Source of the DNA: Hydrolagus colliei
Lineage: Eukaryota
DNA length: 64,000 nt
Assembly (NCBI GenBank): GCA_035084275.1
Contig: CM068742.1
Coordinates: 154,814,001-154,878,000 of the forward strand
Direction of reading: 5' to 3'
In this document: positions 8,322 through 62,094 of the stretch, one piece after another
Layout of the letters: every line of letters starts with the position of its first letter
How positions within the stretch are numbered: the first letter of the stretch is position 1
Position numbers and translations under genes: made by a program
The notes under the pieces: model-generated
Database searches by the model: none
The model's input: only the letters and a program-made list of their open reading frames with translations
Told to the model about the DNA's origin: nothing

Positions 8322-8530
8322 CTATTTGTCTGTCTCTGACTCCCTGGGGTTGGAGCGGGAGGTGAGGTCAAGAGTGTCATTAGAAACTGGCTGCCCTTGT
8401 GGCCTCCCTCTCCTCCAAATCACTGTGACTGTGGCACGATTCAGGTATGTGTTGGACCTGGTGAAGGAGCAGGGCAGTGTGGCATCACCTCCCTTGGTAC
8501 CAGTCACTGACGGGAGCTTCTCTTCATGAC
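8322..8530 (-). pseudogene. SIGLEC15-like copy B, truncated second V-set exon
   Basis: Acceptor ctgtcacag|GTCATG at 8530. HEEKLPSVTGTKGGDATLPCSF..VIWRR is paralogous to V2 of copy A, but ends in TAG at 8322-8324 before the D-G strands. Confidence 0.75.
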
Positions 8531-9212: not shown

Positions 9213-10829
9213 CTGTGAGGACACACATGGTGTAATGTGAACCAGAACACAATATAAAAGCAAACAGGCAACACTGAGCTTGGACAAGAGCTTGGTTAGG
9301 TCACAGCTGGGAGTAATGTGGACAGTTTGGGATCCCCTGTAAAAAGGATATAAAAGCGATAGAAAAGATGCAGCGTAGATTTCAGGTGCAACCAGAGACT
9401 TGAGAATTTGTTTTTTTTTACATTTGCTCAAAAAGGATTATCTGGTAAAGGCTCAAAGAATTACACCAGTGTATTTTCGGCTGTTCAGCCTGTTAGTCAC
9501 AGAAGAAATAAATCTAAATCCATCACAAAAAATGAACTAAGAAGAGGTTAGAAATCCTGTCTTTACACAGAGGAGCTGCGATTGTCTCTGCCACAAACTA
9601 GACTTGAGTTTGTCTAGTTAATAAGAATAAGTGCTATATCAAATGCAATGATTATTATTCTTCTGATTATTAACCACAACTTTGCATTTCATAGAATCAT
9701 AGAATCATAGAATCATAGAATTTTACGGCACAAAAGGAGGCCATTCGGCCCATCTAGTCTGTGCCGGCTCTTTGAAAAGAGCGATTCAATCCCACTGCCC
9801 TGCCCGCTCCCCATAGCCTAATAGACCCGTTCTCCCTAAATAAAGATCTAATTCCCTTTTAAAAGTTGTTATCGAATCAGCCTCCACCACCTTTTCAGGC
9901 AATGCATTCCAGATTCGAACAACTCGCTGAGTGAAAAAAATTCTCCTCAGCTCCCCTCTACTGCACCTTGAAACTATTTTAAATCTGTGACCACGAGTCA
10001 CAGATTCACCCACGAGTGGAAACAGTTTTTCTCTATTTGCCCTGTCGAAACCCCTCAAACAAACAAACAAACAAAACTTACATTTATATAGCGCCTTTCA
10101 CGTCGAGAGGACATCCCAAGGCGCTGTACAGTCAGGTAGGACAAGAGCAGGGTGGGAAGGATCAGGCAGGATGAAGAATAGTAGGAAAAGTAACTGTATT
10201 AGTGGGCGAAACGCGGCAGCCAAATTGCGCACAGCAGTGTCCCACAATCAGTGACGGAAGTGGGACTAGGGGCAAAAGGGGGTAAAGAAGCAAAAGGGGA
10301 GGGGTCGAGGCAGGGGAAGAAAAGCAGGAAAGTCGACTGTATACTTGTGGGCGAAACGCGGCAGCCAAATTGCGCACAGCAGTGTCCCACAAACAATCGC
10401 GAAAATGGGGCCAGGGGAGAAAGGGGGAAAAGAGGGTAAGGGGGGAGAGGGAGGGAAAGGTGGGATGGGTTAGGGTTAGGGAGGAAGAGGGGGGAGAAAG
10501 GGGGGTAAGGAAGAGAGGGAGGGAAAGATGGGTGGGGGCCAGATCAGGAAGAGGGAAGAGGGAGGGAAGGGGGAAAGGGAGGAGAGAAAGTGGGGAAAGG
10601 GAGTGAGGGAAGAAGACGATGGGGGCAGGGGTGGGGGGAATCAAACAACAATAATAAACAACAAAAGCAATAATATTAACAACAAAAACAGCAACAAACA
10701 ATAACCAACAATCGTCCAACAATCGTCCAGCAACCACTCCCTGTCCTCGCCGCCCGCCCGGACCATCCCTGAGATGGCGGGAAAACAAGGTCCCAGTCGT
10801 GGTGTCAGGCCCCAAAACCCACCGGCTCC

Positions 10830-10968
10830 TCAGTCGGTGAACCCGGGGACTCTGTGATGGCCCTGGCACCTCGGACATGGTGTGTCTGGCCGGCTCGCAC
10901 AGCAGCAGCAGCAGCAGCCCGATCACCGTCTGGATCTCCCGCCACGAGATGATCCGTCGCTTGCAGCA
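10830..10968 (-). pseudogene. Histone H2B C-terminal fragment (diverged, 1-nt frameshift)
   Basis: [35 protein letters not shown] aligns by eye to H2B [36 protein letters not shown]. Confidence 0.75.
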
Positions 10969-10969
10969 C

Positions 10970-11257
10970 CTGGGCGCTCTCCCCCTCGCTCTCCCCCTCG
11001 CCCTCCCCCTCGCTCTCCCCCTCGCCCTCCCCCTCGCTCTCCCCCTCGCCCTCCCCCTCGCCATCCCCCTCGCCCTCCCCCTCGCTCTCCCCCTCGCCCT
11101 CCCCCTCCCCCTCGCTCTCCCCCTCGCTCTCCCCCTCGCGGAAGACGTGCGCCACCCGCTGCCTGAGGAAAGTGCCGAGGTCGCGGCCTTCCCAGGTCCT
11201 GTCGAGGGGCCGCTCTTCGCACAGCCGGAGGAAGCGCCGACAGCGAGTGGCCGCCAT
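10970..11257 (-). pseudogene. UQCC2: UQCC2 N-terminal (first-exon-sized) fragment with internal repeat expansion
   Basis: [43 protein letters not shown](..)SAQ versus recalled human UQCC2 [46 protein letters not shown]. Confidence 0.85.
10976..11137 (-). repeat. 12-nt minisatellite GAGGGGGAG(A/G)GC, ~13.5 units
   Basis: Directly visible 162-nt tandem array; source of the (EG)n, (RARG)n, (LALP)n and (PPRS)n ORFs. Confidence 0.95.
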
Positions 11258-11259
11258 TC

Positions 11260-11357
11260 CCTCCGCGATACTCCCCGTCGTGCAAAAAGATGGCTTCGTT
11301 GGCCGACTGCAAATAGAGGAAGAAGCGGCAGCGATGGAAGCCGCCTCCAGCTGGTGG
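11260..11357 (-). pseudogene. PEBP-family (PEBP4-like) fragment
   Basis: Frame [32 protein letters not shown] versus recalled PEBP4 [33 protein letters not shown] (12 of 17 identical over the GxHR motif). Confidence 0.65.
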
Positions 11358-14209
11358 GCTGATCTTATAAACATGATCTTATAAACCTCTATTAGGTCTC
11401 CCCTCAATCTTCTCTGCTCCAGAGAGAATAACCCTAGCCTATCTAGCCTCTCCTCATAGCTGAAGTCCCTCAATCCTGGCACCATCCTAGTAAATCTTCG
11501 TTGTACCCTTTCCAATGCCTTCACATCCTTTCTGTAGTGTGGTAACCAGAATTGAACACAGTATTCCAGCTGAGGCCTCACCAAAGTCCTATAGAGGTTA
11601 GTCAGCACTTCCTGAGTTTTGTACTCTATACCCCTATTTATAAAGCCTAGTATCCCATATGCCTTCTTAACAGCCTTGTCTACCTGTCCTGCCACCTTCA
11701 ACGAGTCACTAACACAAATCCCCAGGTCTCTCTGTTCCTTCACACCATTTAAAATTGTACTATCTAGCCTATATTGCCTCCCTTCATTTCTTCTCCCAAA
11801 ATGCATCACCTCACACTTCTCTGCATTAAACTTCATCTGCCATGTGTCTGCCCACTTTACCAATTTGTCTATATCCTCTTGCAGATGGCTACTATCCTCC
11901 TCACTGTTTACTATTCTCCCTAACTTAGTGTCTTCTGCAAACTTGGAAACTGTACTCCCTACACCCAAGTCCAGATCATTGATGTAGATTACAAACAGCA
12001 ATGGTCCCAAAATTGATCCCTGTGGCACACCACTGCTCACTTCCCTCCAATCTGAAAAACAGCCGCTCACTACAACTCTCTGCTTTCTGTCTCGCAGCCA
12101 GTTGTGGATCCACGCTGCCACTGTCCCTTTTACGCCATGGGCCTTTAATTTCATAATACGTCTCTTATGTGGCACTTTGTCAAATGCCTTTTGAAAGTCC
12201 ATGTAAACTACATCAACTGCGCTACCATTATCCACCCATTCCGTTACCTCATCAAAAAATTCTATCAGATTTGTAAGGCACGATTTGCCTTTAACAAATC
12301 CATGTTGACTGTCCTTTATTAGCCTATTTCTTTCTAAGTGAAGATCTACCTTGGCCCTGATTATGGACTCTAGAAGTTTGCCCACTACCGACGTTAGACT
12401 GACTGGTCTGTAGTTACCAGGCTTGTCCTTCTGCCCCTTTTTATACAAGGGAGTAACATTAGCTATCCTCCAGTCCTCTGGCACGACCCCTGTGTCCAAG
12501 GAACATTGAAAGATCATGGCCAGAGTCCCTGCTATTTGCTCCCGTGCCTCACTTAGTAACCTAGGGTGCATCCCATCCGGACCAGGTGACTTATCCACCT
12601 AGAGCAACGTCAACCTTTTTAGCACTTCCACTCTGGTTATAATTATTCTATCCATTTCTCCTACCCTCTCCTCTAATACCATGGCATTGGCTGTATTATT
12701 TTCTTTTGTGAAGACAGAGGCGAAATACTCATTCAGTACATCAGCCATGCCCTCTGCCTCCACAATGAGATTTCCTCCTAGGTCCCTAATTGGCCCCACC
12801 CTATCCTTGACCAACCTTTTACTCTTAATATGTTGGTAAAAAACCTTAGGGTTCCCCTTAATCTTACTCGCTAATTGTTTTTCATGCAGTCTCTTTGCCC
12901 CTCTAACTTCCTTTTTTAGTTCTATCCTACACTTCCTATATTCTGCTTGGTTCCCTTCTGAATTTTGAGCCTGACACTTATCATAAGCCTCTTTTTTTTG
13001 TTTTATTTTGGCCCCGATTTCCTTAGTCATCCAGGGAGGTTTGGATGCCTTACATTTCACCTTTGTGGGGATGCTTTTGACCTGTGCCTGAACAATCTCC
13101 TCTTTGAACGCTGCCCACTGCTCGTTAGTTGTCTTACCTGCCAATTTTTCTTTCCAATCCACCTTGGCTAGGTCCCACCTCAACTCATTGAAATTAGCCC
13201 TTTTCCAGTTGAGTGTCCTCACCTGTGATCGTTCCTTATCCCTTTCCATAATTATTCTGAATCTAACGATATCTTGGTCACTATTCCCTAGATGCTCACC
13301 TACAGAAACCTGTTGAACTTGCCCTACCTCATTTCCCAAAACTAGATCCAGCAATGCTTCTTTCCTCGTTGGACTGGAAACATACTGATCAAGAAAGTTG
13401 TCCTGCACACACTTCAGGAATTCTTCTCCCTCCTTGCCCTTTACTCTACTATTCTGCCAGTCTATGTTGGTATAGTTGAAGTCACCCATTATCACTACTC
13501 TATTAGTTCTGCATTTCTCCGTGATACTCTTGCAGATCTGCTTGTCTATCTCCTCCCCACTATTTGGTGGTCTATAGTATACCCCTAACAGTGTAACTGC
13601 ACCTTTTTTATTCCTCATTTCTAACCAGATAGATTCGGTTTTTAGTCCTTCTTCCACCTCGTTCCTTTCTAAGGCAGTCACTGAGTCCTTCACTAAAATT
13701 GCCACCCCGCCCCTTTTTCTCCCTTCTCTATCCCTCCTGAATACATTATAACCAGGAATGTTCAACTCCCATTCCTGCCCATGCTGGAGCCAAGTCTCTG
13801 TTACTGATGGAGTTTCCTGTCACATCTATGAGAAGTTTCAAAGCTCTTCACAAAATATACTGTAGAAGTGAATTAAGCACAAAAAAATTGCACTACAGTA
13901 TGCTATGTAAATGTAAATTGTTGTTGTTGAATTCACTGTATATTTTCTGGGTGTAGGGAAGCAGCACATTGCACACATCCCACAAACAGTAGTGGATTGA
14001 TTAACCAATTTTTAATCATTTATTTTTGAATTAATTATTATCAAGGAAAAGCTATCCGCCAATCAACTAACAACCAGGTTCCTACTTACTGCTGGGTAAA
14101 CAGAGGAATGTTAAGTAAGGAAACTTACCCAACATTTCCTCTGCTGGGAATCAAACTCAGGTTTCTCTCACCTGCGAGGCGAGTGCTATTAATACAGGAG
14201 TCCACAGTA

Positions 14210-17200
14210 AAGTCTACCAAATGAAATTGGAAGATTGGTACACAGTGGCTTGTGAAGATATGATAGCTCAAGGTCTAAATAGATATATTCCCAAAAAAGG
14301 GAAATGTGCGACAACCAAGCCAGGCTGGATGACCAGGGATATTCTGTCTAGGATGAAAAAGAAGAAGACGGCATACGACAATTGGAAGACGCAAGATACC
14401 GAGGATCGCAAAGTGCATTATAGAAAATGCAGGAGTGATCTTAAAGGAGTGATAAGACAGGCTAAAAGATCGCATGAGAAGAGGTTAGCGGATAACATCA
14501 AGGGGAATCCTAAAATATTTTATAAGCACAAAAAGGAACAAAAGGTTTGTAAAAGGTAGGGTGGGGCCAATCAAAGACAATGAGGGCAATCTTGTTGTGG
14601 AGGCAGAGGGCATGGCTGATGTACTGAATGAGTACTTTGCATCTGTCTTCACAACGGAAATGGATGCCCCAAATGCTGCAGTATTGGATGAGAGGGTAGA
14701 GGAAATAGATTACTATAGACAGAGAGGAAGTTCTGAAAAGATTGACTGAGCTCAAAATTGATAAGTCACCAGGACCAGATGGGTTTCACCCAAGGTTGCT
14801 GTGGGAGATACGGGTTCAAATAGCGGAGGTTCTGGCCATTATATTTCAATCTTCATTGGACACAGGAGTGGTGCCAAGAGACTGGAGAGTGGCTAATGTT
14901 ACCCCCCTCGACAAAAAGGGGCAGAAAGACAAACCCGGATATTACAGGCCAGTTAGCCTTACTTTGGTAACAAGAAAACTACTGGAGACCATAATCCGGG
15001 ACAGAATAAATCTCTACTTAGAGGAACACAAGGTAATTAGAGACAGTCAACATGGATTTGTTAAAGGCAAATCTTGCCTAACAAATCTAATAGAATTTTT
15101 TGAGGAGGCGACTGCGAGGGTTGCTGAGGGAAATGCGCTGGACGTTATTTACATGGATTTCAAAAAGGCTTTGGACACAGGACCGCAGAAGAGATTAATA
15201 AACAAATGAGAGGCCCACGGTATTAAGGGAACAGTGGCAGTTTGGAATAAGAACTGGCTGAGTGACAGAAAGCAGAGGGTGGTGGTTAATGGTTGTTTCT
15301 CAAAATGGAAGGAGATGAGCAGCGGTGACCCCCAGGGATCGGTATTGGGACCACTGCTCTTTCTAATATATATTAATGATCTGGACTTGGGCACAGAGAG
15401 CACTATTACCAAGTTTGCAGATGATACAAAGTTAGGTAGGGTAATAAATAGTGAGGAGGACTGTAACCAACTGCAAGCAGACATACACAGATTGGTGGAA
15501 TGGGCTGACATATGGCAGATGGATTTTAATGTGGATAAGTGCGAGGTGATACACTTAGGTAGGAAAAATGATAGGAGGCAATATAGACTCGGTAGCTCAA
15601 TCTTAAGGGGGGTGAACGTACAGAGAGATCTGGGTGTTCAAGTAAGCGAATCATTAAAGGTAGCAGGGCAAATAGATAAGGCAGTAAACAAGGCATTTGG
15701 TGTACTGAGCTTTATTAGTAGGGGCATAGAGTATAAGAGTAGGGAGGTTATGGTTAATCTATACAAAACACTGGTTAGGCCTCAGCTTGAGTGCTGCGTC
15801 CAGTTCTGGGCACCTTACTTCAGGAAGGACAATAAGGCACTGGAAAGGGTGCAGAGGAGATTCACGAGAATGATACCAGGAATGGGGAACCTTAGCTATG
15901 AGGACAGACTGGAGAAGTTAGGACGTTTCCCATTAGAGCAGAGAAGGTTACGTGGGGACCTGATAGAGGTCTTCAAGATCATGAAAGGTTGCGACAGCTA
16001 GATAGGGAAAAGCTGTTTCCGCTGGTAGGTGTGTCTGTGACCCGTGGTCACAGTCTTAAGTTATCAACGAAAAGAAGCAGAGGGGAGGTTAGAATAATTT
16101 TTGTAACTCAGCGAGTTGTTCGAATTTGGAATTATCTGCCTGAAACCGCCAGCAGTACATCTCCACAAACGTTTTTTCCTCCCGCACTCACCCAGTTACC
16201 TGTGGGGTACCCCAGGGATCCATCCTTGGCCCCCTCCTTTTCCTCATCTACACACTTCCTCTTGGGGATGTGATCCGCAGACATGGGGCACACTTCCACA
16301 TGTACGCGGATGACACCCAACTCTATCTCTCCACTTCACTTTGTGACCCCCCCAGTCCCCCGATATTCTATCAGCCGCCTGTCACACATCAGGGGCTGGA
16401 TGAGCACAAATTTCTTGCAGCTGAATGTTGACAAGACGGAGGCCATACTCCTTGGCTCTCGTCAACGTCTCCATTCACACGGCTCTCACCTCCTCCACCT
16501 TCCCGGCCAGGCCCCTAAAACTCTCCCAACCTGTGCGCAACCTTGGCGTCAGGTTCGACCCCCGACTGTCCTTCCTCCCCCACATCCGGTCCCTCACCAG
16601 CACCGCCTTCTACCACCTCCAACGGATTGCCCATCTCTGGCAATACCTCACCTCAAAAGCCACTGAAACCCTGGTCCAGGCCTTTGTCACCTCTCGGCTG
16701 GACTATTGCAACGCCCTCCTCTCTGGTCTCCCCTCCACCACAATCCACAGAGTCCAGCTAATCCAACTAATGCCGCCCGCATTCTCACCCGCACCAAACT
16801 CCGCTCCCCCATTACCCCAGTCCTTGCCAGACTTCACTGGCTCCCTGTCCCTGAGAGGATCCACTTCAAGATCCTCACCCTTGTTTTCAAATCCCTCCAC
16901 TCCTCTGCCCCCCCTGTCTCTCTGATCTCCTCTCCTCCCAACCCAGCACCCGCTGCTTTCGTTCCTCTGGGTCTGGCCTCCTCCACCCTCCCGAATCCTC
17001 TGCTCCACCCTCGGCGGCCGTGCCTTTAGCCACTACGCCCCGAGGCTCTGGAACTCCCTCCCTCACTCGCTTCGCCTCGCCCCCTCTCTTCCCAGTTTCA
17101 GGTCACAGTTGAAGACCGTTCTCTTCGACCGACTTTTGGTCACCTTCCTGCCCCTGCCTCTGGCTCAATCCCGGGATCTGCTACTGTGAAGCGCTCTGAT

Positions 17201-21903: not shown

Positions 21904-24900
21904 CTGGAGACAGACACAGGTGAGAGTGTGGGCATTATATAGAGCTCCATCTTCACTTGTCCTCAGGCTGGAAACAGATTCAATCTGTGGGAAAAGTGAA
22001 AGGATTCACGATCCTTGTTCAATTAAAATGGAATCACTTATCAGCCAGTCAAACCCCATTTTGTGTACTGCTGAAGCAAAACCAACACTTTGTCTCCACT
22101 AATGGGGTTTTTCTCCCATCCACAGTAGGTTCTGCAGCTTATCCCAAATCTCCATCTGTGGCCCCATCCTTTTCTGACTTATATACTCCCTCATAATGAT
22201 GTCACATGCAGACCCAGGGAGAACCTCCAATGTATGCAGATGACACACAAATCCCATCCCCCAGAGGATCAAATTCAAGATCCTTGTCCTCATTTTCAAG
22301 GCTATTCACGGCCTTGCCCACCCCCCTCCACTATCTCTTTGACCTGCCTGCCATCCTCCTATGAATCTGCCTGCACTCTCCGATCAGAGGGCTCTGGTCT
22401 GCTTCATGTCCCCCGCCTGACCCGTCCTACCAACAGTGGACGGGCTAACAGCCTCTCTGCCCCCACACTCTGGAACTCCATTCCACAGTCCCTTCACCTC
22501 ACTCCCTCCCTCGCCACCTTCAAGGGAGGGAAGGTCTCAAGACACTCCTCTTTGATCATGCCTTCTGCTGCCCTCCCAACTCTCTCCCCTCCTGACTCTC
22601 TTTCGCCCTCCCTTGCTCGCATCCCAACAACAACAATAACAACAACAAAAACTTATAAAGCGCCTTTCACGTCGGGAGGACGTCCCAAGGCGCTGCACAG
22701 GAGGCGTGTGACCCGAGCTGGGAGGGGAGTGTTCGGAAAGGGGTGAAACGCGTAGGGGAGGTCGAAAAATTCAGGGGGGGAACAAAAGGCACGGTCGAAG
22801 AGGAAAGTCTTCAAACCGGCCTTGAAAGAGGAAAGGGAAGAAACAAGGCGATTATAACATGACTGTTCAGCACCTTGGGACGTCCTCCTGACATGAAGGT
22901 GCTCGAGAAATGTAATTTTCTTGTTGCACTTCTCCACCAGTTGCTACTCCAGGTTTGCTAATGGTCCTCACCTTCAAAGCCCTACATGGCCTCATCCCAC
23001 CCTCTATTTGCGACCTCCTAACCCCCTACCAACCTGCCCGCTCCTTCCACTTAGTGAGCTCTGGCCTGCTCCATGTCCGCCAACCCACGCACCCCCACCA
23101 TTGGTGGGTAACCCTTTAGCCACTCTGCCCCTAACTTCTGCAATTCCATCCCATAATCCCTCCTCTCACACCCTCCCTAGCCTCCTTCAAGTCCTGTCTC
23201 AAGTCCTCTTTAACGGTCCCATCAGTCACCCCAAATCCCCTGCATCATCCCCAATCCCAACCTCAGCGTGGGTCTGAAACATTGACTTCTAACCCCTTGG
23301 GCCGTCCTCCCATTGTGAAAGGCGCTATACAAAAGTGGTAATTTTGTTGTTGTTAGCTTGCTTATAATAAAACTTACAATTTGCTAAACCATTTTTCATG
23401 TCTTCTAGATGTCTCAAAGCGCTTCACAAAATATATTGTATATTTGTCTGCGAAACAGCGGCAGCTAATTGCTCACAGCAGTGTCCCACAAACAGTCATG
23501 GATTGAAGACCAATCTTTTTTTCGAGGGATTATTATTATGTGTACGGAGTAAAGAAATTTGCCCAAGGTTTTGCCCTGCCTGGAATCCAATCCGGGTGTC
23601 TTGATTGCATGGTGAGTGCTGTAACCACTGAGCTACAGGGCTCCACAGGCCTGGATGAGCACAAACAACTTTCTGCAGTTGAATATTGACAAGACTCCTT
23701 TGAAGCTACTGTCAATATCTTCTCTGCTGTGGCTCTGACCTACTCAAGATCTCCGGCTAATCCCTCAGACACACCAAACCTGTGCATAACACCTAGGTGT
23801 CAGGCTCGATCTGCAAGTGTGCTTCCTAACCCACATCAATTCACTGACCAGGACAACCTCTTTGCTCCATCTCCACCACATTACCCGGCTCTCACAACAA
23901 CAACTACTTCTTACACATATATAGTGTCCTCCATGCAGTGTAGTGTCTCAGAGCACACCCATCCAATGCAGCCCAAACCCTTATCCATTGTTTTGTTATC
24001 TCCCACCTTGATTATTCCAATGCCCTCCTCATTATTTTCCCCAACTCAGTCTCCACAAATTCCAGTTAATTCAAAATGTCTACAAATTCCTTCACAACCT
24101 AGGTCCTGACCCTACCATATGCATCCTCCACTCAGCTGGCTTTGGCCTCCTCCTTGTCCCTCGTTCCCTTTGCTCCGCCATTGCTGACCATGTTTTCAAC
24201 CACTAAACCCTAAAAGTAAGGAATTCTTTCCCTTAATTCTTCTGCTTTGAGTACCCCATCTCCATCAAATCTGGAGACCTAACCTTTTGACTTTGCTGAT
24301 GGTGATTTCTCCCCCCGGCTGAGTGTCCCCACCATTGCTAAACCCACTTGAATGGTGATATATAAATGCAAGTTTTATTTGAAGGGGTGGAATCCCATGT
24401 TCTAAAGTTGATGACATAGTCACAAAAGTCCACCATGTCACCACCTGTGAGACATGTTGTCTTCATATCTAAATTGGTGCAGAAATGTGGAAATCCTTCA
24501 ATCAGACTTAATTGGGAACTATTTGGGACTTGTGGAAAACATTCTCTAGCTAACATTCTCCCACCCCACTATCGGTGGTCAGACTTTCAGTGTATCTGCC
24601 ACTCTCTGGAACTCCATCATGGATGCCCTTCAGTATTCCCCATCCATTGCCAATTTGAAGCAATCTGGAACTCTATCCCACTTGAAGGGCACTACATAAA
24701 TGCAAGTTGTTGTTCCTGCCCCCTTCAAGATCCATCTCAAAATCTTCCTCTTTAACCGCACTTTCAGGTATCCCCATCTTATCCCCTCTTATCCCCATCA
24801 TGTGGTCCCCACATCCAGCTCACGCACAAACCCTGGAGACCAGTGCATTGGGATGTCCTCCGATATGAAAGTTGCTGTGTGAATGTCAATTTGTATGGCA

Positions 24901-24934
24901 AAAAAGGTGCGAGACTTAAGACTTAATGACAAAC

Positions 24935-25315
24935 CTCCCATTTTACAAACGAGAATAATCCCCGTGACCAACATTAGGAAAAATTTAGCTGCAGGTATCA
25001 GACACAGCATTGCGATGATGAAACTGCCATCACGCTGTTGTCCAGGAGCGAGGATGTCTCGGGTGTCACTTCCCTGTGTGTTCTCAGCTACACAGCGGTA
25101 AGTTCCCCTCAGCTTCAGGCCCCAGATCTTTCCCACGGTTAGATGCGTGTCTGGTACGTGTGTGACTGGTGTGTGGCTGGTGTTGACGGGCAGCGTGTTA
25201 TTCTGGGGGTCGATCCATGTGATGGTGGCTGGTGGTTCCCCCTCAGCCGTGCACACGATGCCACCTCCGGCTCCATCACCGGCCACGAGGGACAGAGTCA
25301 GGATGACAGCCGGAG
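24935..25315 (-). CDS. SIGLEC15-like: SIGLEC15-like copy A, C2-set Ig + transmembrane exon (381 nt)
   Basis: Acceptor ccaaag|CTCCG, donor GGAG|gtttgt. CTAEGEPPATITW and YRCVAENTQGS match Siglec-15 C2 (CTAEGEPPPALAW, YTCTAANSLGRS). TM IIAMLCLIPAAKFFLMLVTGIILVC contains Lys. Confidence 0.85.
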
Positions 25316-25668
25316 CTTTGGGTATAAAGAAACACAGTTAATCTCGCTCAGTAGACTCCTCACAAAATGGGATCTGGATTAAGAAAGCTCTTTGGCCAAT
25401 CTGATTGTATTCCTCCAGTGTTGGCAAAAGAGTCAGAGGATAGAGGAGGACAATTGCTTTTACACAACAAGTGTTTTTTTCAGTCTGGAATGGAAAGAGG
25501 TGCCTAGAATGATATGGCATTAGCCAATTCATCCCAATGAGAACCTCATATATTACTCTCTAGTCTCTGGTAACATGGTTATATGTGTAACCATGTCACA
25601 CGTTATATTCCACTGCATCGCATCCAAACCTATCGGAATCTTGACACAGTAACAGAGGTTTCACTTAC

Positions 25669-26190
25669 CAACGACTCGCAGCCACAGCAGATTCTGTGTC
25701 ACATGTTCCTGTGTAGTGTGTCCACGAGTCACAGGTCCCAGCATCGCATGTTCCGGTGTAATTTGTCCACCAGTCACATGTGCCTGTGGCACATGTTCCT
25801 GTGTCGTGTGTCTACGAGTCACATGTCCCAGCATCACATGTTCCTGTGTAGTGTGTCCACGATTCGCATGTCCTTGCGTCACATTTTCCCACAGTGTGAA
25901 CGTGATGTGCACATGACAGAAATACTGGTCAGTGTCATTTAATTCCAAGTCCCTGATCCTCAAGGAACCATCTCCATCCCGCACATTCCCAACCAGCAGA
26001 TAGCGATTTTCATTGTTCAATGGCTCTGACTTCCCAGAGTTGTCAAAGGTTTCATTAATAATGGGACGGCTTTGTGGACTCCTTCGCCTCCAAATGACAT
26101 TGACGTTACTTGGGTGTGTGCCTGGCACGGTGAAGGAGCAGGGCAGTGTGGCATCACCTCCCTTTGTACCAGTGATTGACAGGAGCTTCC
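25669..26190 (-). CDS. SIGLEC15-like: SIGLEC15-like copy A, second V-set exon with repeat insertion (522 nt)
   Basis: Acceptor tcatgaag|GGAAG, donor TTG|gtaagt. Has ATLPCSF, VIWRR, RYLLVGN, GSLRIRDL, DTDQYFC and G strand LWLRVV; frame fully open. Confidence 0.82.
25691..25870 (-). repeat. Coding minisatellite, 4 x 45 nt (15-nt subunits)
   Basis: Encodes HANRGHTTQEHVMLG / HVTRRHTTQEHVPQA / HVTGGQITPEHAMLG / PVTRGHTTQEHVTQN. Confidence 0.9.
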
Positions 26191-27877: not shown

Positions 27878-28282
27878 CCAACACCAGGAGAGTGGTTTCA
27901 GTCAAGCTCACGAGCACCTCGGGACCGTGCCCAGTGAGTGCCACCCAGCACTGGTACCTGTGTTGACTGTCAGGCATAGCGAGCTTCTCCACCGCTAGTG
28001 AGGCGTTCATCTCCCTCGGGTTCCCTGCCAGCCAGTATCGCCTGCCTATGTTCTGATGGATTAAGTTCTCAGACATGTTGGAAGGAGAATTCGTCGGCAG
28101 ATAGTTTGTGCAGTTGAATACTACAGCTCGGTTGCCCTTTCTCTTTGTTGTCCACACGACCGAGATGTTGCCTTTGTATCCGGGGTCAGGGAGGGAGAAG
28201 CTGCAGAGCAGAATGGCGGAGTCCCCTTCCTGGCCAGTCACCATGCCTGGGGCAGCCATCACCCAGCCGTCAACACCGACAT
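27878..28282 (-). CDS. SIGLEC15-like: SIGLEC15-like copy A, first V-set exon (405 nt)
   Basis: Acceptor ggctggcag|ATGTC, donor TTGG|gtgagt. Has AILLCSF, ISVVW, RYWLAGNPREMNASL and RYQCWV; phase 1-1. Confidence 0.85.
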
Positions 28283-33025: not shown

Positions 33026-33077
33026 GTGCGACTCGGGCGGGCGCTAAAAGTGTAGACAGTACAATCCACAGGATCAT
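33026..33077 (-). CDS. SIGLEC15-like: SIGLEC15-like copy A, signal-peptide exon (MILWIVLSTLLAPARVA, 52 nt)
   Basis: ATG at 33077, hydrophobic leader, same length and C|gtatgtagtt donor as copy C; joins V1 in frame. Confidence 0.75.
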
Positions 33078-41660: not shown

Positions 41661-41949
41661 GGCCATATGTACTGACCACGTGTGTGAGACCCCCCTGCTG
41701 ACACAACCCCTCTGTTTATGACAGCACTCGCCTCACATAGGAGAGGACCTGGGTTCGATTCCCCGGCCGGGGAGAAACCTGAGGCTAGTTTCCTTACCCC
41801 TCCAGGCCTCTGCAGTAGGCAGGACCCCGCTTGTTAGTCAGGATTGACAAGAGTTTATTATAAGGTTTGGCGTGATAAGGCGCTATATCAAATTCAAGGA
41901 TTATTATTATTATACACTCTCTCCCCGGAAACTAACTCCACAACTATCA

Positions 41950-43025
41950 GAAGGCATTTGACAAAGTGCCCCATGAGAGGCTTGTTTCCTTTTTAGACTG
42001 GAGGGAAGTGTGCAGTGGCGCCCCCCAGGGATCAGTTTTGGGACCACTGTTCTTTTTAATATACATTAATGATTTGGATTTAGGGAGTACGGTTTCCAAA
42101 TTTGCAGATGATACTAAGTTAGGGAGAATAGTAAATAGTGAGGAGGATAGTAGCCATCTGCAAGAGGATATAGAGGAAATGGTAAAGTGGGCAGACACAT
42201 GGCAGATGAAGTTTAATATAGAGAAGTGTGAGGTGATGCATTTTGGGAGAAGAAATGAGGGGAGGCAATATAGGCTAGAGAGTACAATTTTAAATGGTGT
42301 GAAGGAACAGAGAGACCTGGGGATTTGTGTTAGTGACTCGTTGAAAGTGGCAGGACAGGTAGACAAAGCCATTAACAAGGCATATGGGATACGAGGCTTT
42401 ATAAATATAAATAGAATACAAAAGTCAGGAAGTGCTGATTAACCTCTATAAGACTTTGTTAGGCCTCAGCTGAAGTACTGTGTACAATTCTGGTCACCAC
42501 ACTTTAGGAAGGATATTAAGGCATTGGAAAGGGTGCAGAGATTTACTAGGATAGTACCAGGAATGAGGGACTTCAGCTACGAGGAAAGGCTAGATAGGCT
42601 AGGCTTATTCTCTCTAGAACAAAGAAGATTGAGAGGAGACCTGAGAGAAGTTAATAAGATTATGTGTGTATTCGACAGGGTGAATAGGGAAAGACTGTTT
42701 CCACTGGTGGGTGAATCAGTGACTCGTGGTCACAGATTTAAAATAGTTTCTAAATGATGCTGAGGAGAGATGTTTTCACTCAGTGGGTTGTTGGAATCTG
42801 GAATGCATTGCCTGGAAAGGTGGTGGAGGCAGATTCCATAACAGCTTTTAAAAGAGAATTAGATTTTTATTTAGGGAGAACATATCAGTTAAGTTATGGG
42901 GGGAGAGCTGGGCAGTGGGATTGAGTTGCTTTGTTCAAAGAGCCGGCACAGACTAGATGGGCTAAATGGCCTCCTTTTGTGCCGTAAATTCTATAAGTTT
43001 AGAATCATAATTCTATGATTCTATG
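41950..43025 (+). mobile_element. CR1 LINE 3' portion with internal deletion
   Basis: [11 protein letters not shown] joined directly to FLDWREVCSG; FADDTK; ATTCTATG tail. Confidence 0.9.
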
Positions 43026-49368: not shown

Positions 49369-51427
49369 AGGTCGCGCCTGAAGACCTTCCTCTTCGACCT
49401 TGCCTACAGCCACCTCCCCCTCTCCTCCGCTTGGAGTCATGCTTCCATCACTGCTAAGCGCTCTGGGACACTACACTTAGGGGCACTATATAAATGCGTG
49501 TTGTTTGGGGTGAACATGTTATGCTATGCTTCTAATGTCACATTGGAAGAAGTGTTAAAATATCACAGGAAACCGACTCGATTTTACATTCATCCCATGT
49601 GGGATGAATGTAAACTTATTATTTAGTCTGAAACTTTGTCTAGATTTTGATAACAGTCGGGATATATGTAACACTTACTTTGTTCCAAGCAATAGTCGAT
49701 CATGTTCTGTGTTGTGTGTTAACTTTTAACCTATTTAACCTCACAAGCATGTCACTGGAGGGCAGCCAGGCAGATTGCCTCGCTATCAGAACAGACTGCG
49801 ATATCTTTTATTCCTCAACAAAGTCCCAATCTGTTCCCGATATCCTTCCTGTCATTGCAACTTTTCATATTTGGTCAACAAGGTCAACAAGGCCATAATT
49901 TCCAAACCAAATTATTTAGAGTTCCACATTAGCAATTTCTATTTGTCTGGTGTAGAATAGTATGTGGAGGGGTGGATCCTGCTTATCTATATCTGGGGAG
50001 TGTTAAGTACAGACAGGTAAGAATTGAGGTTAAACCAGCTAAATCTGCACAGTTTACCACAGCAGAGCACTGACAAGCTTTGCGTTACTTGTCCAACTAT
50101 GACCACCCTACGACCTCGCTAAACAAATGTAATTTTGTTGTTGTTGTTAAGATTTTGGTTTGCAGGGATAACAGGAGCTAGCTGGGAATACCATGTGCCT
50201 AGTGTCTCTTCTACCAAGTCCTTCCAATGAGCCATGCTGGCTGATCTGTTATTAGCAGTGTACTATACAATAGTCTAATTCAGAAACTAGTGAGACTACA
50301 AAGATCATCCCAATTCTAACATTGCATGGTATGTCACCTTAGAGTTAACGTTCTCTGAAGCGACTCTGCCTACCTCTATCCCTACCGTAGATGGATAGTC
50401 ATTGAAGTTTATGGGAGTGAAGTGATTTGGAATGAGAATTACCAATGGAAAAACCAAACTGAGATCCTCGCTGCTTCATCAATTAGACACTAAAAATCTC
50501 ATGGCACTGGAGAGGCAGCTCAAAAAGAAAAGCAAGTTTCTCGTCGATAATCCTCCAGATAGAATTGATCCTTGTTGCACTTAAAATGGCAGCAGACTTT
50601 GCCCAGGATTTTGTTTTGACAGTGATTACAGCTAAAAGCACTTTGACTTTGTGGCATGATAAGGCGGTTTAAAAATACAAAAGTCTTTTGTCTAAATCTG
50701 GAGTTTCTCAGAATAAGCAGCTTTTATTCTACAAATGGGATCACAAAGTACATTTCGACTTAATTTGCCCTACCTACCACTGTTCCCACTTGCTTAAAAT
50801 TTAGAGCATGTAATGCTGCTATATACCTGATTCCGCACTCTCACTTGTTAAATGCGTGTTTGTGAAATGTAGGGAAAGGGTTGTGCTTTGTCTGCTGTTG
50901 ATTAAATTCTCTCATTTTGTCTCTCTCTAGGCTGGCAGCAAGTGCCTCCCCTCGTTATCTCCCTTGGACGTGATGTTATTTGGGTGACTGCATTCGCTAT
51001 CTGAGCAAAGTTTTATGTCCTCGTGATGCCCTTGCGCCCAACTCTGCTTAAAACCTCCTCTTTGGGCGGTTTGTTTTCCTTGGAACAATTTCACAAGTAG
51101 TTGATGCTGAATCTTCTAATTCTGTTTTAATGAAAGGCTTACACTCGACAGAAAGTTCTTGTTCCAAATTGCCTCCCCTCGCATTCCCACGTGAGTCTCT
51201 CAGTGATTTGGCAAAGTCTTGGTGCAGGGAATGTTAATGATTCCCGCACTCTGTGCCCAGCGATCGCAATGTTAACTTTGAGGTGTACTCCAACCCTGAT
51301 CAGACTGAACCCTGTCTCTTCCAACTTCTCATGAGCTGCCTGAGCACCTGGATGTTAGCAGCTTTTGCTGGACTCAACGTCTTGGGTGCTCGCTGTCACT
51401 TTTAGCCAAAGATCTAGCAACCGGGAA

Positions 51428-51775
51428 ATGGCTTCTGCTACAATCATCCACTTTAGTCACATCGACTATGTTATCTTTGTTCTGCTCCTGGTCCTGTCCT
51501 CCGCTATTGGACTGTTCTACGCCTTACGCGGCGGGAAGCAAAGGACCACGCAGGAATTCCTGCTCGCCAATCGCAGTATGGGCTTCCTGCCGGTGGCTTT
51601 GTCGCTCCTTGCCACCTTCCAGTCGGCGGTGGCCATCCTTGGTGTCCCGGCTGAAATTTACACAAACGGCACCCAATACTGGTTCCTCGGCTGCTCCTAC
51701 TTCCTGGGACTCCTCATCCCGGCTCACATCTTCCTTCCCATGTTCTACCGGCTCAAGCTGACCAGCACCTACGAG
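51428..51775 (+). CDS. SLC5A6: SLC5A6 (SMVT) coding exon 1
   Basis: [59 protein letters not shown], near-identical to recalled SMVT; donor GAG|gtaaga. Confidence 0.95.
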
Positions 51776-53759
51776 GTAAGAGGGAATCGGTTACTCAGCA
51801 GTCCCTCGGTAAAACTGACAGGGGTGGGAGAGATGGAGGCAGGCGGGGTGGGGGGGGAGAGGAACAGAGAGGCAGAAAGAGATGACAATGGGGGAAGTGA
51901 GGCAGCATAGGGTGGGAATGGAGAGATGGGAGAGGAACAGAGGAAACGAGAAGATCAGTGGAGGTCGGGAGGGGGCAGAGGAGAAAAGTAATGGTACTGC
52001 ATAGAAGCTGGCTTTTAAATTAAGAATTTTTCACAATTTAATAATAATCCTTTTTAATATAGTGCCGCATTATGTCTTCAAGATGCCTCGAAGCACTTCA
52101 CAGTATATACTATAAAGTAAACTGACTGTATATTATGTGAGAGAAACACCATGAAGTTCAGGCGAAGACACTGAAGAATTGCTTCACTGCCCCTTTGTGT
52201 TGTGCCACTTGTGTGGCTTTAGTGAGCTAAAACATTAAGTTACCAATTCACAGATGTCTTACAGTTTGGCATCTGTCCTGTTACAGTGAGGCTGGAGGAG
52301 TCAACACAATCCAAATACAGGAGGCTCAATAAGTAACCTGATTCTCAGTTATTTACAGAGCGGCAAGAGATTATATAAACTTCAGTGGCGAGCCCAACAT
52401 GCACAACATGATTCTCAATATTTTTCATGCTTATCGTCACCTCTCCTTTCTTCCTGCCTCGACGTTGTTCATCGTTCTGAGACGCAATGGGCAATCTCTC
52501 ATAATGGGGTGGGGGCGTATAGCTCAGTGATTAGAGCACTGGCCAGGGTTCAATTCCAGTTAGGGTGAAACCCGGGGCAAGTTTCCTTACTCCACACGGC
52601 TGATAATAATCCCTGAAAGAAAAATAAAAAATTGCTAATTTTAATTCACGACTGTTTGTGGGAGGCTGCTGTGCATAATTGGTTGCCGCACTTCTCCCAC
52701 ATATATACAGTCGATTCACTTTATTGTATTTTCCGTGAAGTGCTTTGAGACGTCTAGAAGACATGAAATCATTATTAATACCGTTTTAACTAAAGAATAT
52801 ACCTCTGACAATACAGTACTTCTCTGTTGTTTGTGAGGTTAAATGCAAATGCGTCAAAATGTCTTGGCTCTAGGTCAGAAGGTTGTGGCTTCAAACCAGA
52901 TGTTGGGAGACTTGAGCTAACAGTTTGGTGGGATGTTAAAATGAGATCACTTCCGCCTGTTATTCAGCCATTTATCCTGACTGTGTTTGTGCCAAAGTGG
53001 CTGCGGTTTAACTGCAAAAAACAGTTGCTTCAAATAAGGGAGTTTATCTTCTCGGTGTCCTGGCCCATAGAACGCACAGTTACTACACTTTTCATCTTTC
53101 TGAGACGGAAAGGGTAATCTTGCGTTACAGTGGAGCTCCTGTAGCTGAGTGGTTAGAACACTCGCCTTACAAGCGTGAGACATGTGTTCAAATCCAGGCA
53201 GAATAGGGCAAAAACTTGGGCAAGTTTCCTTACTCCACACGCCTAATAATCCGTCCCAAAAAAACACATTAATAAAAATTGGTCACTCATTCTACAACTG
53301 TTTGTGGGGACGCTGCTGTGCGCAATTGGCTGCCACGTTTCGCCCACAAAATACAGTGAATTCACTTTACAGTATATCCTGTGAAGAGCTTTGAAGCGTC
53401 GGTATGTTGTGAAAAGTGCTATATAAAATGAAATGATTATTATGTTGTTATTATTTAAAATATATCCCGTGAAGTGCTTTTAGACGTCTCGAAAATATGA
53501 TAAGAATCTATATAAAATTTGGGACGTCCTCCCGACGTGAAAAAGGCACTATGTAAGTGCAATTTTGTTATTGTTATTGCTTTGAAACACTTCGAGCTGT
53601 TAGTATGATAAAGTACAATTAAAAATGCAAGTTTCTCCCACTGAGCACCAACATTGCTAACATCAACCATCTAGCTATCTATCTTGGATTCATAGACTGC
53701 ATGTTTGGATATGCTCTTAGTAAATACCGCTCCCACAGCTCAGCTTCCACCCTCTAGCG

Positions 53760-60400: not shown

Positions 60401-61517
60401 TGAGTTAAGGGAGATGAAGTCATGGTCCGAGATGGCTTTGTGGTGTGCATTTTCTTTAAAGTCTTCCAACCACTCCCTGTTTTCTAAAATTGATTTTGTA
60501 ATGACTACATTTATCTACTCAAATAAGGGGCATTAATAGTGGAAAATAAGACTGAATGTTGATTCTCTGCTTTCTGCCTTCGGGTTTGAGGGTTTAACCA
60601 ACTGTCTCTTCATGTCTCTTCATGGTAATGCTGTTCGGAAGATTTTCCGTTACATTGACTAAGCCACTATCTGAGCCTTGCGCACACATTAAAAAATAGT
60701 GGTCACTCAATCCACGACTAAGGGAAGGTGACTTTAGAATGGTTGAACAGGAAGGTCTTAAGGGGGCAGGGGGTGGGTTGCTCTGTGAGCTGGTGCAGAA
60801 TCAATTGGCTGAATGGCCTCATTCTGTGCTGTAGATTTCCATGTTTCTAAGTGACGGTTGATTCGGAATGTTTAAAAGGCAAAATGGTAGAAACTTTGTA
60901 GCATAATAATAATCCCTGCATTTGATATCGCGTCTTCTAGACTGCGTCTCAAAGCGCTTCACAGAATAGACTGTAAAGTGAATTGACTGTATATTTGTGG
61001 GCGAAACATGGCAGCCAATTGCGCACAGCAGCGTCCCCACAAACAGCCGTAGATTGAATTGACCAATCAGAAGAAGAGGGGAAAAGATTGGAAAATGGGA
61101 TTGAAAAATCTGACCTAATAAAATAGCAGGTGAACCGAATATCTTGTCTGTGTTCTTGGCCTGAGCACGATGTGGAGGCCATTGTTGGAGCCATTGACTG
61201 AGTGGGTGTGTGTGATTCTCAGTCACTGCTACAGGCCATATTCAGATAGGCCTCTGTGGTGCCTCACTGGCTTGTGGTTTTCATGCATGGAGTTGCTGCT
61301 TGCGCTGTTAGCTCCAACTTTTTAATCTCTTTAATGTTTCCCCTCTCACTTTCCCCTTTTCCCTCCTCTTCACATGACTGTGGAGGGCTTCTCTTTCTCT
61401 TCTCAATTTCCCATTTCCTCACCTCTCCTTACTGCCACTCTTCTGCCTCCGCCTCCTCTTTACTTCCACTCTACCTTGATCCCTGCCCCATCTTTCTATC
61501 CCTTTCTCCCCTCTCAG

Positions 61518-61672
61518 GGTGGGCTGAAGGCTGTCATCTGGACTGACGTCTTTCAGACTCTGGTGATGTTCTCTGGACAGCTGGCTGTCATCATCATCGG
61601 AGCCATTGAGGCAGGTGGGATGAGTGAGGTCTGGCGGATTGCCGTGGAACAAAAGAAGATCTCCACGATCAA
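61518..61672 (+). CDS. SLC5A6: SLC5A6 coding exon 5 ([18 protein letters not shown])
   Basis: ctctcag| ... |gtaagc, 155 nt. Confidence 0.95.
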
Positions 61673-62094
61673 GTAAGCGATATAGATGGAGAGTTTGGTT
61701 TTCAGACTCTTTAAGCATGGTGACGGTTTCCATTCAGGTCAGAAACTCAGCTGACTAAAAAACAATTGATTATTGGCCATGGCGGCGTGAGAAACTCTCT
61801 TCTCTCTTGTTTTGATTGTGTGTCGGGATCGGAGGAGTCTGTCCAAAGGCAGATTTCTCAAGGAGGAAGGTCTTGAGACGGGCCTTGATTGAGGAAGCAA
61901 GGAAGAGGGCGAGGCAAAGGGATTCGGGCATGGAGTTCCAGAGGGTGGGAACAGAAAAACCTGTCTGCCAATAGTGGGAGCTGACAGGTTGATATCGTAC
62001 TAAGGAGCATGACCATGGAGGGCTTTAAAAATGATGATAAGAAAGTAAGGAAACTTGCCCAAGGTTTTGCCCTGATCTGGCTGGATTCGAACAC

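Follow-up and report, generated by a model that had tools for sequence, protein, structure and literature searches.

Gene A and the repeat array in its second V-set domain

The window analysed here is a whole stretch of 64,000 nucleotides from Hydrolagus colliei (assembly GCA_035084275.1, contig CM068742.1, positions 154,814,001 to 154,878,000), and all coordinates count from its first letter. It contains a cluster of three minus-strand paralogs, referred to as gene A, copy B and copy C. Gene A is well supported by its sequence as a Siglec-15-like activating-type receptor, with a signal peptide, two V-set domains (V1 and V2), a C2-set domain, a lysine-bearing transmembrane (TM) helix and a tail of few residues. 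The F–G loop of V2, equivalent to the third complementarity-determining region (CDR3), holds a long in-frame array of histidine-rich pentapeptides. The sequence gives good support for reading this array as a coding minisatellite in the second V-set domain of the receptor. It is an unusual, minisatellite-built loop in an otherwise known kind of receptor, a Siglec-15-like member of the immunoglobulin (Ig) superfamily. The features of the cluster are listed in Table 1.

Tandem Repeats Finder reports a repeat at 25699-25889 with a period of 45, 4.2 copies, 78% matches, 0 indels and a score of 249; at a period of 90 the same array is reported at 25694-25889, with 84% matches and a score of 287. Compared with itself, the array has an identity of 0.77 at a lag of 45 and of 0.85 at a lag of 90; in 2000 shuffles no lag exceeded 0.44. 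The 45-bp units are 73-91% identical to one another. Both the array and the gene are encoded on the minus strand, which across the array has one open frame only, with stops in the other two. In this frame, strand F (YFCHVHITF) is followed by TLW, by the 13 pentads ENVTQ GHANR GHTTQ EHVML GHVTR RHTTQ EHVPQ AHVTG GQITP EHAML GPVTR GHTTQ EHVTQ, and then by NLLWLRVV of strand G; the segment ahead of the first pentad, ENVTQ, is DQYFCHVHITFTLW. The units lie head to tail and in frame, with periods of 15, 45 and 90 bp and no indels, as is typical of a coding minisatellite. Histidine accounts for 10 of the 65 residues, against 3 in the 101-residue V2 core; threonine for 12, proline for 3, and serine and cysteine for none. 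With the array, the F–G loop is about 70 residues long. A plus-strand open reading frame (ORF; 25583-25942, 119 aa) runs antisense through the array, where two plus-strand frames are free of stops; it was rejected as a gene and is regarded as a by-product of the repeat.

The annotated relative from Callorhinchus milii, XP_007907096 (“Siglec-15 isoform X1/X2”), is 73% identical across the full query; none of the database proteins is identical to an exon of the window. Its locus, L001 (from GCA_018977255.1), and the window are collinear through introns and intergenic DNA, at 65-90% DNA identity and mostly at about 70-80%. Judged by this collinearity, gene A and its C. milii counterpart are syntenic orthologs in two different holocephalans.

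The initial annotation had described four 15-residue repeats at 25691-25870. These repeats are real, but each is a triplet of pentads; the basic unit is the pentad, present 13 times in all, and the range given for the array ended 18 bp too early on the 5′ side of the gene. Translation, Pfam matching and splice-site reading agree with its placement of the insert in the F–G (CDR3-equivalent) loop of a V-set domain, germline-encoded, in frame and with splice sites intact. It had also credited copies B and C with an equivalent loop of about 15 residues; the loops of about 12-15 residues in the window belong to V1, and confirmation of a short V2 loop comes solely from homologs in C. milii and sharks. 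The minus strand, the Siglec-15-like identity with both lectin arginines lost, and the pentad at the start of strand G as the amplified unit had no place in that account.

V2 matches the Pfam V-set family (PF07686) with E = 1.8e-13 (51 bits, cut-off 26), and its best match in the PDB is Siglec-15 (7zoz, E = 5.5e-10). It carries the V-set hallmarks: the B–F cysteine pair, the tryptophan of strand C and D-x-x-Y-x-C ahead of strand F, with C17, W33 and Y89 invariant and C91 nearly so in the alignment of relatives (alignment A1). The domain has no Pfam match to the pentapeptide-repeat beta-helix (PF00805, A(D/N)LXX) at E up to 1. That fold was rejected for the missing profile match and for the Gly/Glu at pentad position 1, which is unsuited to an inward-facing site. 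The C′–C″ region of V2 (about 26020-26050, minus strand) is 5 residues shorter than in C. milii and strongly diverged (ETF-----DNSGKSEPLNNEN vs DTLGLASHTNPGESETANEG), forming a second fast-changing loop of the same domain.

Siglec-15 is the closest solved sequence relative of both V domains of gene A, being the best PDB match for V1 as well (7zoz, E = 1.9e-9), and RefSeq gives the C. milii ortholog the same name. The two proteins have in common the motif ‘RY-L-GNPR-D-SL-I--L---D--Y-C-V’, a V-set followed by a C2-set domain (Pfam I-set in gene A, 26.7 bits, cut-off 23.7), a lysine in the TM helix and a very short tail. Unlike Siglec-15, gene A has two V-set domains rather than one, in the order V1-V2-C2, and is one of several clustered paralogs with this extra V domain. 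Its F–G loop in V2 has about 70 residues against about 12, and V1, judged by its sequence and the 7zoz alignment, is without the second cysteine in C′–C″, where human Siglec-15 has the C95-C104 pair (PMC10264397).

The two proteins also differ at the lectin site. In human Siglec-15, R143 on strand F is the essential sialic-acid-binding arginine, forming a salt bridge (PMC7799145, PMC10264397). In the 7zoz alignments this arginine is absent from both V domains of gene A: V1 has a tryptophan aligned to the R of YFCRVEF, and V2 has a histidine. Because both lectin arginines are lost, gene A does not appear to be a canonical sialic-acid receptor. With the V1-V2-C2 order, this makes two features of Siglec-15 that gene A does not have, and it is therefore called Siglec-15-like and not filed as a sialic-acid lectin. 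Copies B and C keep the arginine in V1 (CRVEL, vs CWVAL in gene A). Since the tryptophan in V1 of gene A is common to C. milii, the canonical site of this gene would have been lost before the two lineages split.

When spliced as in C. milii isoform X2, the tail of gene A is KMG(D). A basic residue in the TM helix and a short tail without an immunoreceptor tyrosine-based inhibitory motif (ITIM), the sequence marks of DAP12/DAP10-coupled activating receptors, are both present, and the spliced KMGD-tail form fits an activating receptor. The TM lysine of Siglec-15 (Lys274) pairs with DAP12 (PMC6941304), and by analogy gene A may couple to DAP12 through its own TM lysine. The alternative read-through tail (24800-24934, minus strand; …SEDIPMHWSPG…) resembles a dispersed repeat with many copies in L001 and in the window, so isoform X1 of C. 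milii likely owes its long C-terminus to this repeat and not to a real cytoplasmic domain.

The candidate signal exon is 52 nt long and lies 4.7 kb upstream of V1. Its ATG, ORF, phase and donor are kept in C. milii (L001 ~14666-14717; MILWIALSAFLATAQVA, GTAAGT), where the block is 79% identical, and both species encode MILWI(V/A)LS(T/A)(L/F)LA(P/T)A(R/Q)VA. About 60 nt of highly conserved sequence stand just before the exon. This 52-nt exon is probably the true leader of gene A. Exon 1 of the C. milii RefSeq model (MAIDSREIAG...) was considered as the true N-terminus and rejected, since no signal peptide is encoded there and the corresponding window sequence contains a stop. As the RefSeq model skips the conserved signal exon and opens with non-signal exons, the 5′ end of XP_007907096 is probably mis-annotated and missing its true signal exon.

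Table 1. Positions of the exons and sequence elements of gene A, copy B and copy C in the window.
Feature	Coordinates	Strand	Description
Gene A, candidate signal-peptide exon	33026..33077	-	MILWIVLSTLLAPARVA + 1 nt; GTATGT donor, phase 1; sole signal-like match upstream of V1
Gene A, V1 exon (membrane-distal V-set)	27878..28282	-	Strand F YQCWVAL; splice sites read; dN/dS 0.22 vs C. milii
Gene A, V2 exon (second V-set domain, holds the repeat)	25669..26190	-	AG acceptor (start 26190), GTAAGT donor (end 25669), phase 1 at both ends
V2, strand F, YFCHVHITF	25898..25924	-	His in place of the sialic-acid-binding Arg (human R143); translation, 7zoz alignment
V2, in-frame array, 13 pentads x-H-(V/T)-T-x	25694-25888	-	65 aa (195 bp) with 12 Thr and 10 His; larger units, four of 45 bp and two of 90 bp
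V2, strand G, NLLWLRVV	25670..25693	-	Directly after last pentad EHVTQ, the counterpart of ENVTQ in homologs; alignment A1, predicted strand 154-172
Gene A, C2-set + TM exon	24935..25315	-	Acceptor cccaaag|CT; either spliced like C. milii isoform X2 (donor GGA G|gtttgt, 24935) or, like X1, read through to a stop at ~24800
TM helix FIIAMLCLIPAAKFFLMLVTGIILVC	24945..25022	-	Lysine codon 24984-24986; translation
Copy B	signal exon 18232-18194, V1 9210-8815, V2 8537-8325	-	V2 cut off at 8325, before strand F, after ...SETDK
Copy C	signal exon 3062-3006, V1 1148-759	-	V2 and remainder beyond the window

Origin, predicted structure and constraint of the array

The ortholog in C. milii has, at the same codon, five pentads (EYTTQ EHTTQ GHVSH GHTTQ EHVTQ; L001 27418-27492). 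The paralogs and shark homologs have one pentad, E-(N/T)-V-T-Q, immediately before D-x-x-x-L-Q-V-V. The length of the array is therefore labile across lineages: 13 pentads here, 5 in C. milii and 1 in paralogs and sharks. In alignment A1 the inserts of 60 residues (window) and 20 residues (C. milii) fall exactly between ENVTQ and D/N-x-x-x-L-x-V-V. Because they sit right at the pentad that starts strand G, the array is best read as a serial multiplication of the start of this strand. The counterpart of ENVTQ in the 7zoz alignment is DRYES (D152-S156 of human Siglec-15), a stretch lining the sialic-acid pocket, in which R153, Y154 and E155 contact sialic acid (PMC10264397).

The pentad was probably multiplied by slippage or unequal exchange, initially as 15-bp units, then as a 45-bp triplet and then as a 90-bp block; this order is drawn from the lag identities and the unit comparisons. 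With only about 1 synonymous change between the two 90-bp blocks, the last expansion seems fairly recent. A search of 1.84 billion representative proteins yielded 330 relatives, and a comparable F–G insert is absent among the best 150 of them. Searches with the array by itself returned runs of HVSQA, HMTQP, GHITR, GHVTR, VGHVA and SLGHV; homology to these histidine-containing repeats was rejected, as the matches are unrelated low-complexity translations. Nothing relevant on repeat-built CDR3-like loops in germline receptors was found in the literature.

AlphaFold2 (AF2) predicts V2 with the array as a confident V-set domain, with a core predicted local distance difference test score (pLDDT) of 88-97; the model has the two-sheet beta-sandwich of a V-type domain. 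Foldseek matches the predicted fold to generic V domains (JAML, Nav beta4, antibody and T-cell receptor) at probability 1.00. Strand F is extended to 87-103 and strand G to 154-172, the last part of which has a pLDDT of 89-97, whereas residues 104-120 and 130-153 fall below 50. Structure prediction, one of the checks proposed in the initial annotation, thus keeps the core intact around the insert and lengthens the F–G ribbon, but leaves the tip at low confidence. The C. milii domain is predicted with F at 92-106, G at 121-137 and a low-confidence tip of 14 residues. The calculated net charge of the array rises from -1 at pH 7.4 to +6.9 at pH 5.5; the C. milii array goes from -3 to +1.

The exons of gene A are intact and, by comparison with C. 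milii, under purifying selection: dN/dS is 0.22 in V1, 0.41 in the core of V2 and 0.40 in C2+TM (dS 0.23-0.39). Loss of the array by splicing or a broken frame had been named as outcomes that would undo the initial proposal. In C. milii neither RefSeq isoform drops any part of the V2 exon, and in two species the ORF runs unbroken across four exons. A UniProt model without the array (P0005) was examined as evidence of splicing-out and rejected. It uses a non-GT junction, carries intronic filler (SDGPR) and deletes strands of both V domains; a model with such a junction, an intronic piece and broken Ig folds is an annotation artefact.

Within the array the pattern is different. Summed over all unit pairs, pN is 0.21 vs a pS of 0.074 (ratio about 2.8), and the two 90-bp blocks differ by about 11 nonsynonymous and about 1 synonymous changes. 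Positive selection was considered on the strength of this ratio and rejected, as the blocks differ by only 12 changes and the excess is not significant (binomial p = 0.17). No selection on the histidines is seen between the 90-bp blocks, where histidine is lost in 2/6 of the His pentads and 11/30 codons are changed overall. Histidine nevertheless occupies pentad position 2 in 10/13 units here and in 4/5 in C. milii. Two C. milii haplotypes (XP_007907096.1 and.2) are three amino-acid single-nucleotide polymorphisms (SNPs) apart and have arrays of equal length. The unconstrained residues and this equal length lean against both a precisely selected motif and hypervariability.

Paralogs and neighbouring features

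Similarity of copy B to C. milii ends at 8325, and no C2/TM exon follows; on this evidence, the copy B of this species is probably a pseudogene that has been truncated. In C. milii and sharks the family has members of two forms, one with a TM lysine and a short tail, the other with a long tail and ITIM-like motifs. The paralogs P0003 and P0004 are of the second form, with long tails, the ITIM-like motif I/V-x-Y-x-x-V and no lysine. As read from these sequences, the two tail forms are the pattern of paired activating and inhibitory receptors. Chimaeras and sharks have a cluster of such paired receptors, Siglec-15-like and with two V domains each, and no paper describing it was found in the literature.

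The signal exon of copy B lies 9 kb from its V1 exon, with a long interspersed nuclear element (LINE) between them. This LINE-type ORF pair in the first intron of copy B (10808-13819, minus strand) encodes an endonuclease (Exo_endo_phos_2) and a reverse transcriptase (RVT_1, E = 4e-32). Further reverse-transcriptase fragments occur at 14709-15998 and 41936-42439, both on the plus strand. A simple (GRA/RGRA)n-coding repeat at about 10900-11250 (minus strand) lies in a stop-free stretch (10165-11364) and looks like low-complexity DNA near the LINE, not a gene. Two plus-strand exons, at 51359-51907 and 61335-61673, match the sodium:solute symporter family (PF00474), and from their strand an SLC5-type transporter gene would lie beside the receptor cluster in the opposite orientation.

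Explanations for the array and comparison with known systems

The array is fairly probably a tolerated, lineage-specific extension of the F–G hairpin, generated by slippage in a fast-evolving paired-receptor cluster. The last pentad and NLLWLRVV would still form strand G and thereby close the Ig fold. The F–G beta-ribbon would gain length from the first and last pentads, and the roughly 50 residues between them would make a flexible tip rich in histidine and threonine. This tip would project at the membrane-distal end of V2, beside V1, and the extension may reshape or occlude the former glycan-binding face of V2. Since the array residues are without visible constraint, any effect would come from bulk, reach or pH-titratable charge and not from a defined binding motif.

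Several points weigh against a merely tolerated extension. The nonsynonymous excess between the 90-bp blocks does not reach significance, and it could be positive selection instead of absent constraint. An in-frame array with His-rich second positions in two lineages could likewise mean a selected composition. The gene model in the source species is read from DNA alone; the evidence for the signal exon is its conservation, and the C. milii RefSeq model uses other upstream exons without a signal peptide. The AF2 alignment is shallow (23 sequences), and confidence in the extended ribbon is moderate only.

Selection for function is the first alternative to be weighed, and it is unlikely. On this account the array would be a His-rich, pH- or metal-gated loop for Zn, Cu or Ni, haem, heparan sulphate or other polyanions, through which a V domain that has lost its Arg would gain a new specificity not directed at glycans. 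The enrichment of histidine over the core, the calculated charge switch, and the frame kept in two species with histidine at pentad position 2 in both speak for it, as does the site of the array in the ligand-contacting F–G/G segment of Siglec-15 (PMC10264397). An excess of nonsynonymous over synonymous change would also fit diversifying selection. But histidine is lost between the 90-bp blocks as often as other residues, and the array, at one histidine per pentad, lacks the HxH or HxxxH spacing that metal sites typically show. In C. milii the array carries a net negative charge at neutral pH and becomes only slightly cationic at pH 5.5, and no homologous His-rich binding module was found among the array-only database matches, all of them unrelated low-complexity translations. 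Copy-number alleles of a variable-number tandem repeat (VNTR), diversifying an innate receptor within populations without RAG, are a still weaker candidate and quite improbable. The difference of 13 vs 5 pentads between species and the fairly recent 90-bp duplication, with about one synonymous difference, agree with such alleles, although the two C. milii haplotypes have identical array lengths despite their three amino-acid SNPs, and 45-bp units only 73-91% identical fall below typical hypervariable minisatellites.

A threonine-rich, O-glycosylated, mucin-like spacer that stiffens or lifts the loop, or shields the V1-V2 junction, is very improbable. The threonine content, the TT pairs in the GHTTQ pentads and the N-V-T sequon in the first pentad are as such a spacer would have them, but an array without serine and with few prolines bears little resemblance in composition to mucin domains, for example the TIM-1 stalk. 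There is hardly any probability left for an array with no biological meaning, whether in a pseudogene or unexpressed gene, spliced out, or produced by the assembly. Such a view could call on the C. milii RefSeq model without a signal peptide, on P0005 without the array and on the truncated neighbour, copy B. It is opposed by the intact ORF of four exons in two species, by dN/dS of 0.22-0.41 and the conserved signal exon, and by the nature of P0005 as an artefact of annotation. Moreover, 195 bp of diverged units are readily spanned by reads, and a related array occupies the same codon in another species, whose genome was assembled independently. The most ambitious proposal combines selection with length variation: a selected, length-variable, histidine-titratable hairpin derived from the glycan-contacting strand-G segment, whose copy number differs between individuals or species and tunes the reach or the pH/metal binding of a DAP12-coupled receptor. 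This proposal is a long shot, and tolerated slippage remains the preferred reading.

Very long F–G loops are known from antigen receptors. The bovine ultralong CDR H3 consists of a beta-ribbon stalk with a disulphide-bonded knob and arises from V(D)J joining and mutation; the CDR3 of shark IgNAR is also long. The array of gene A is like these in being a very long F–G insert in a V domain, with a base that is predicted to continue strands F and G as a ribbon. Unlike them, it is encoded in the germline by a single exon and involves neither V(D)J joining nor hypermutation, and as it contains no cysteines it forms no disulphide-bonded knob. It also lies in the second and not the outermost V domain, unlike the bovine and shark CDR3, and its tip is predicted at low confidence. 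The bovine analogy, drawn already in the initial annotation, therefore holds for a possibly lengthened beta-ribbon base in the AF2 model and fails for the cysteine knob and for recombination.

Repeats of variable length are also found in other surface proteins. The neck repeats of DC-SIGN/L-SIGN, the mucin-stalk insertions of TIM-1 (HAVCR1) and the decamers of PSGL-1 are polymorphic repeats outside the binding domain. They resemble the array in being in-frame ectodomain tandem repeats of surface receptors that change length by gain or loss of units, but they sit in a stalk or neck, whereas the repeat of gene A sits within an Ig-fold loop. Histidine-rich glycoprotein (HRG), with its tandem pentapeptides, and the sea-urchin SpTransformer (185/333) proteins have His-rich regions with several histidines per unit. 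The likeness here is of short tandem histidine units in secreted or surface immune-related proteins, with a pH-dependent charge; the array of gene A differs in having one histidine per pentad and no sequence homology to either.

The series of 1, 5 and 13 pentads documents the stepwise growth of an insert from the start of strand G. If the array is merely tolerated, it shows how far the V-set fold accepts an in-frame minisatellite at the CDR3 position. If it has a function or is polymorphic, holocephalans would have in it a germline-encoded way to diversify the length of a CDR3-like loop in an innate receptor of the DAP12 type, and a selected, length-variable module, if true, would mean RAG-independent variation of a CDR3-like loop in the oldest jawed-vertebrate lineage.

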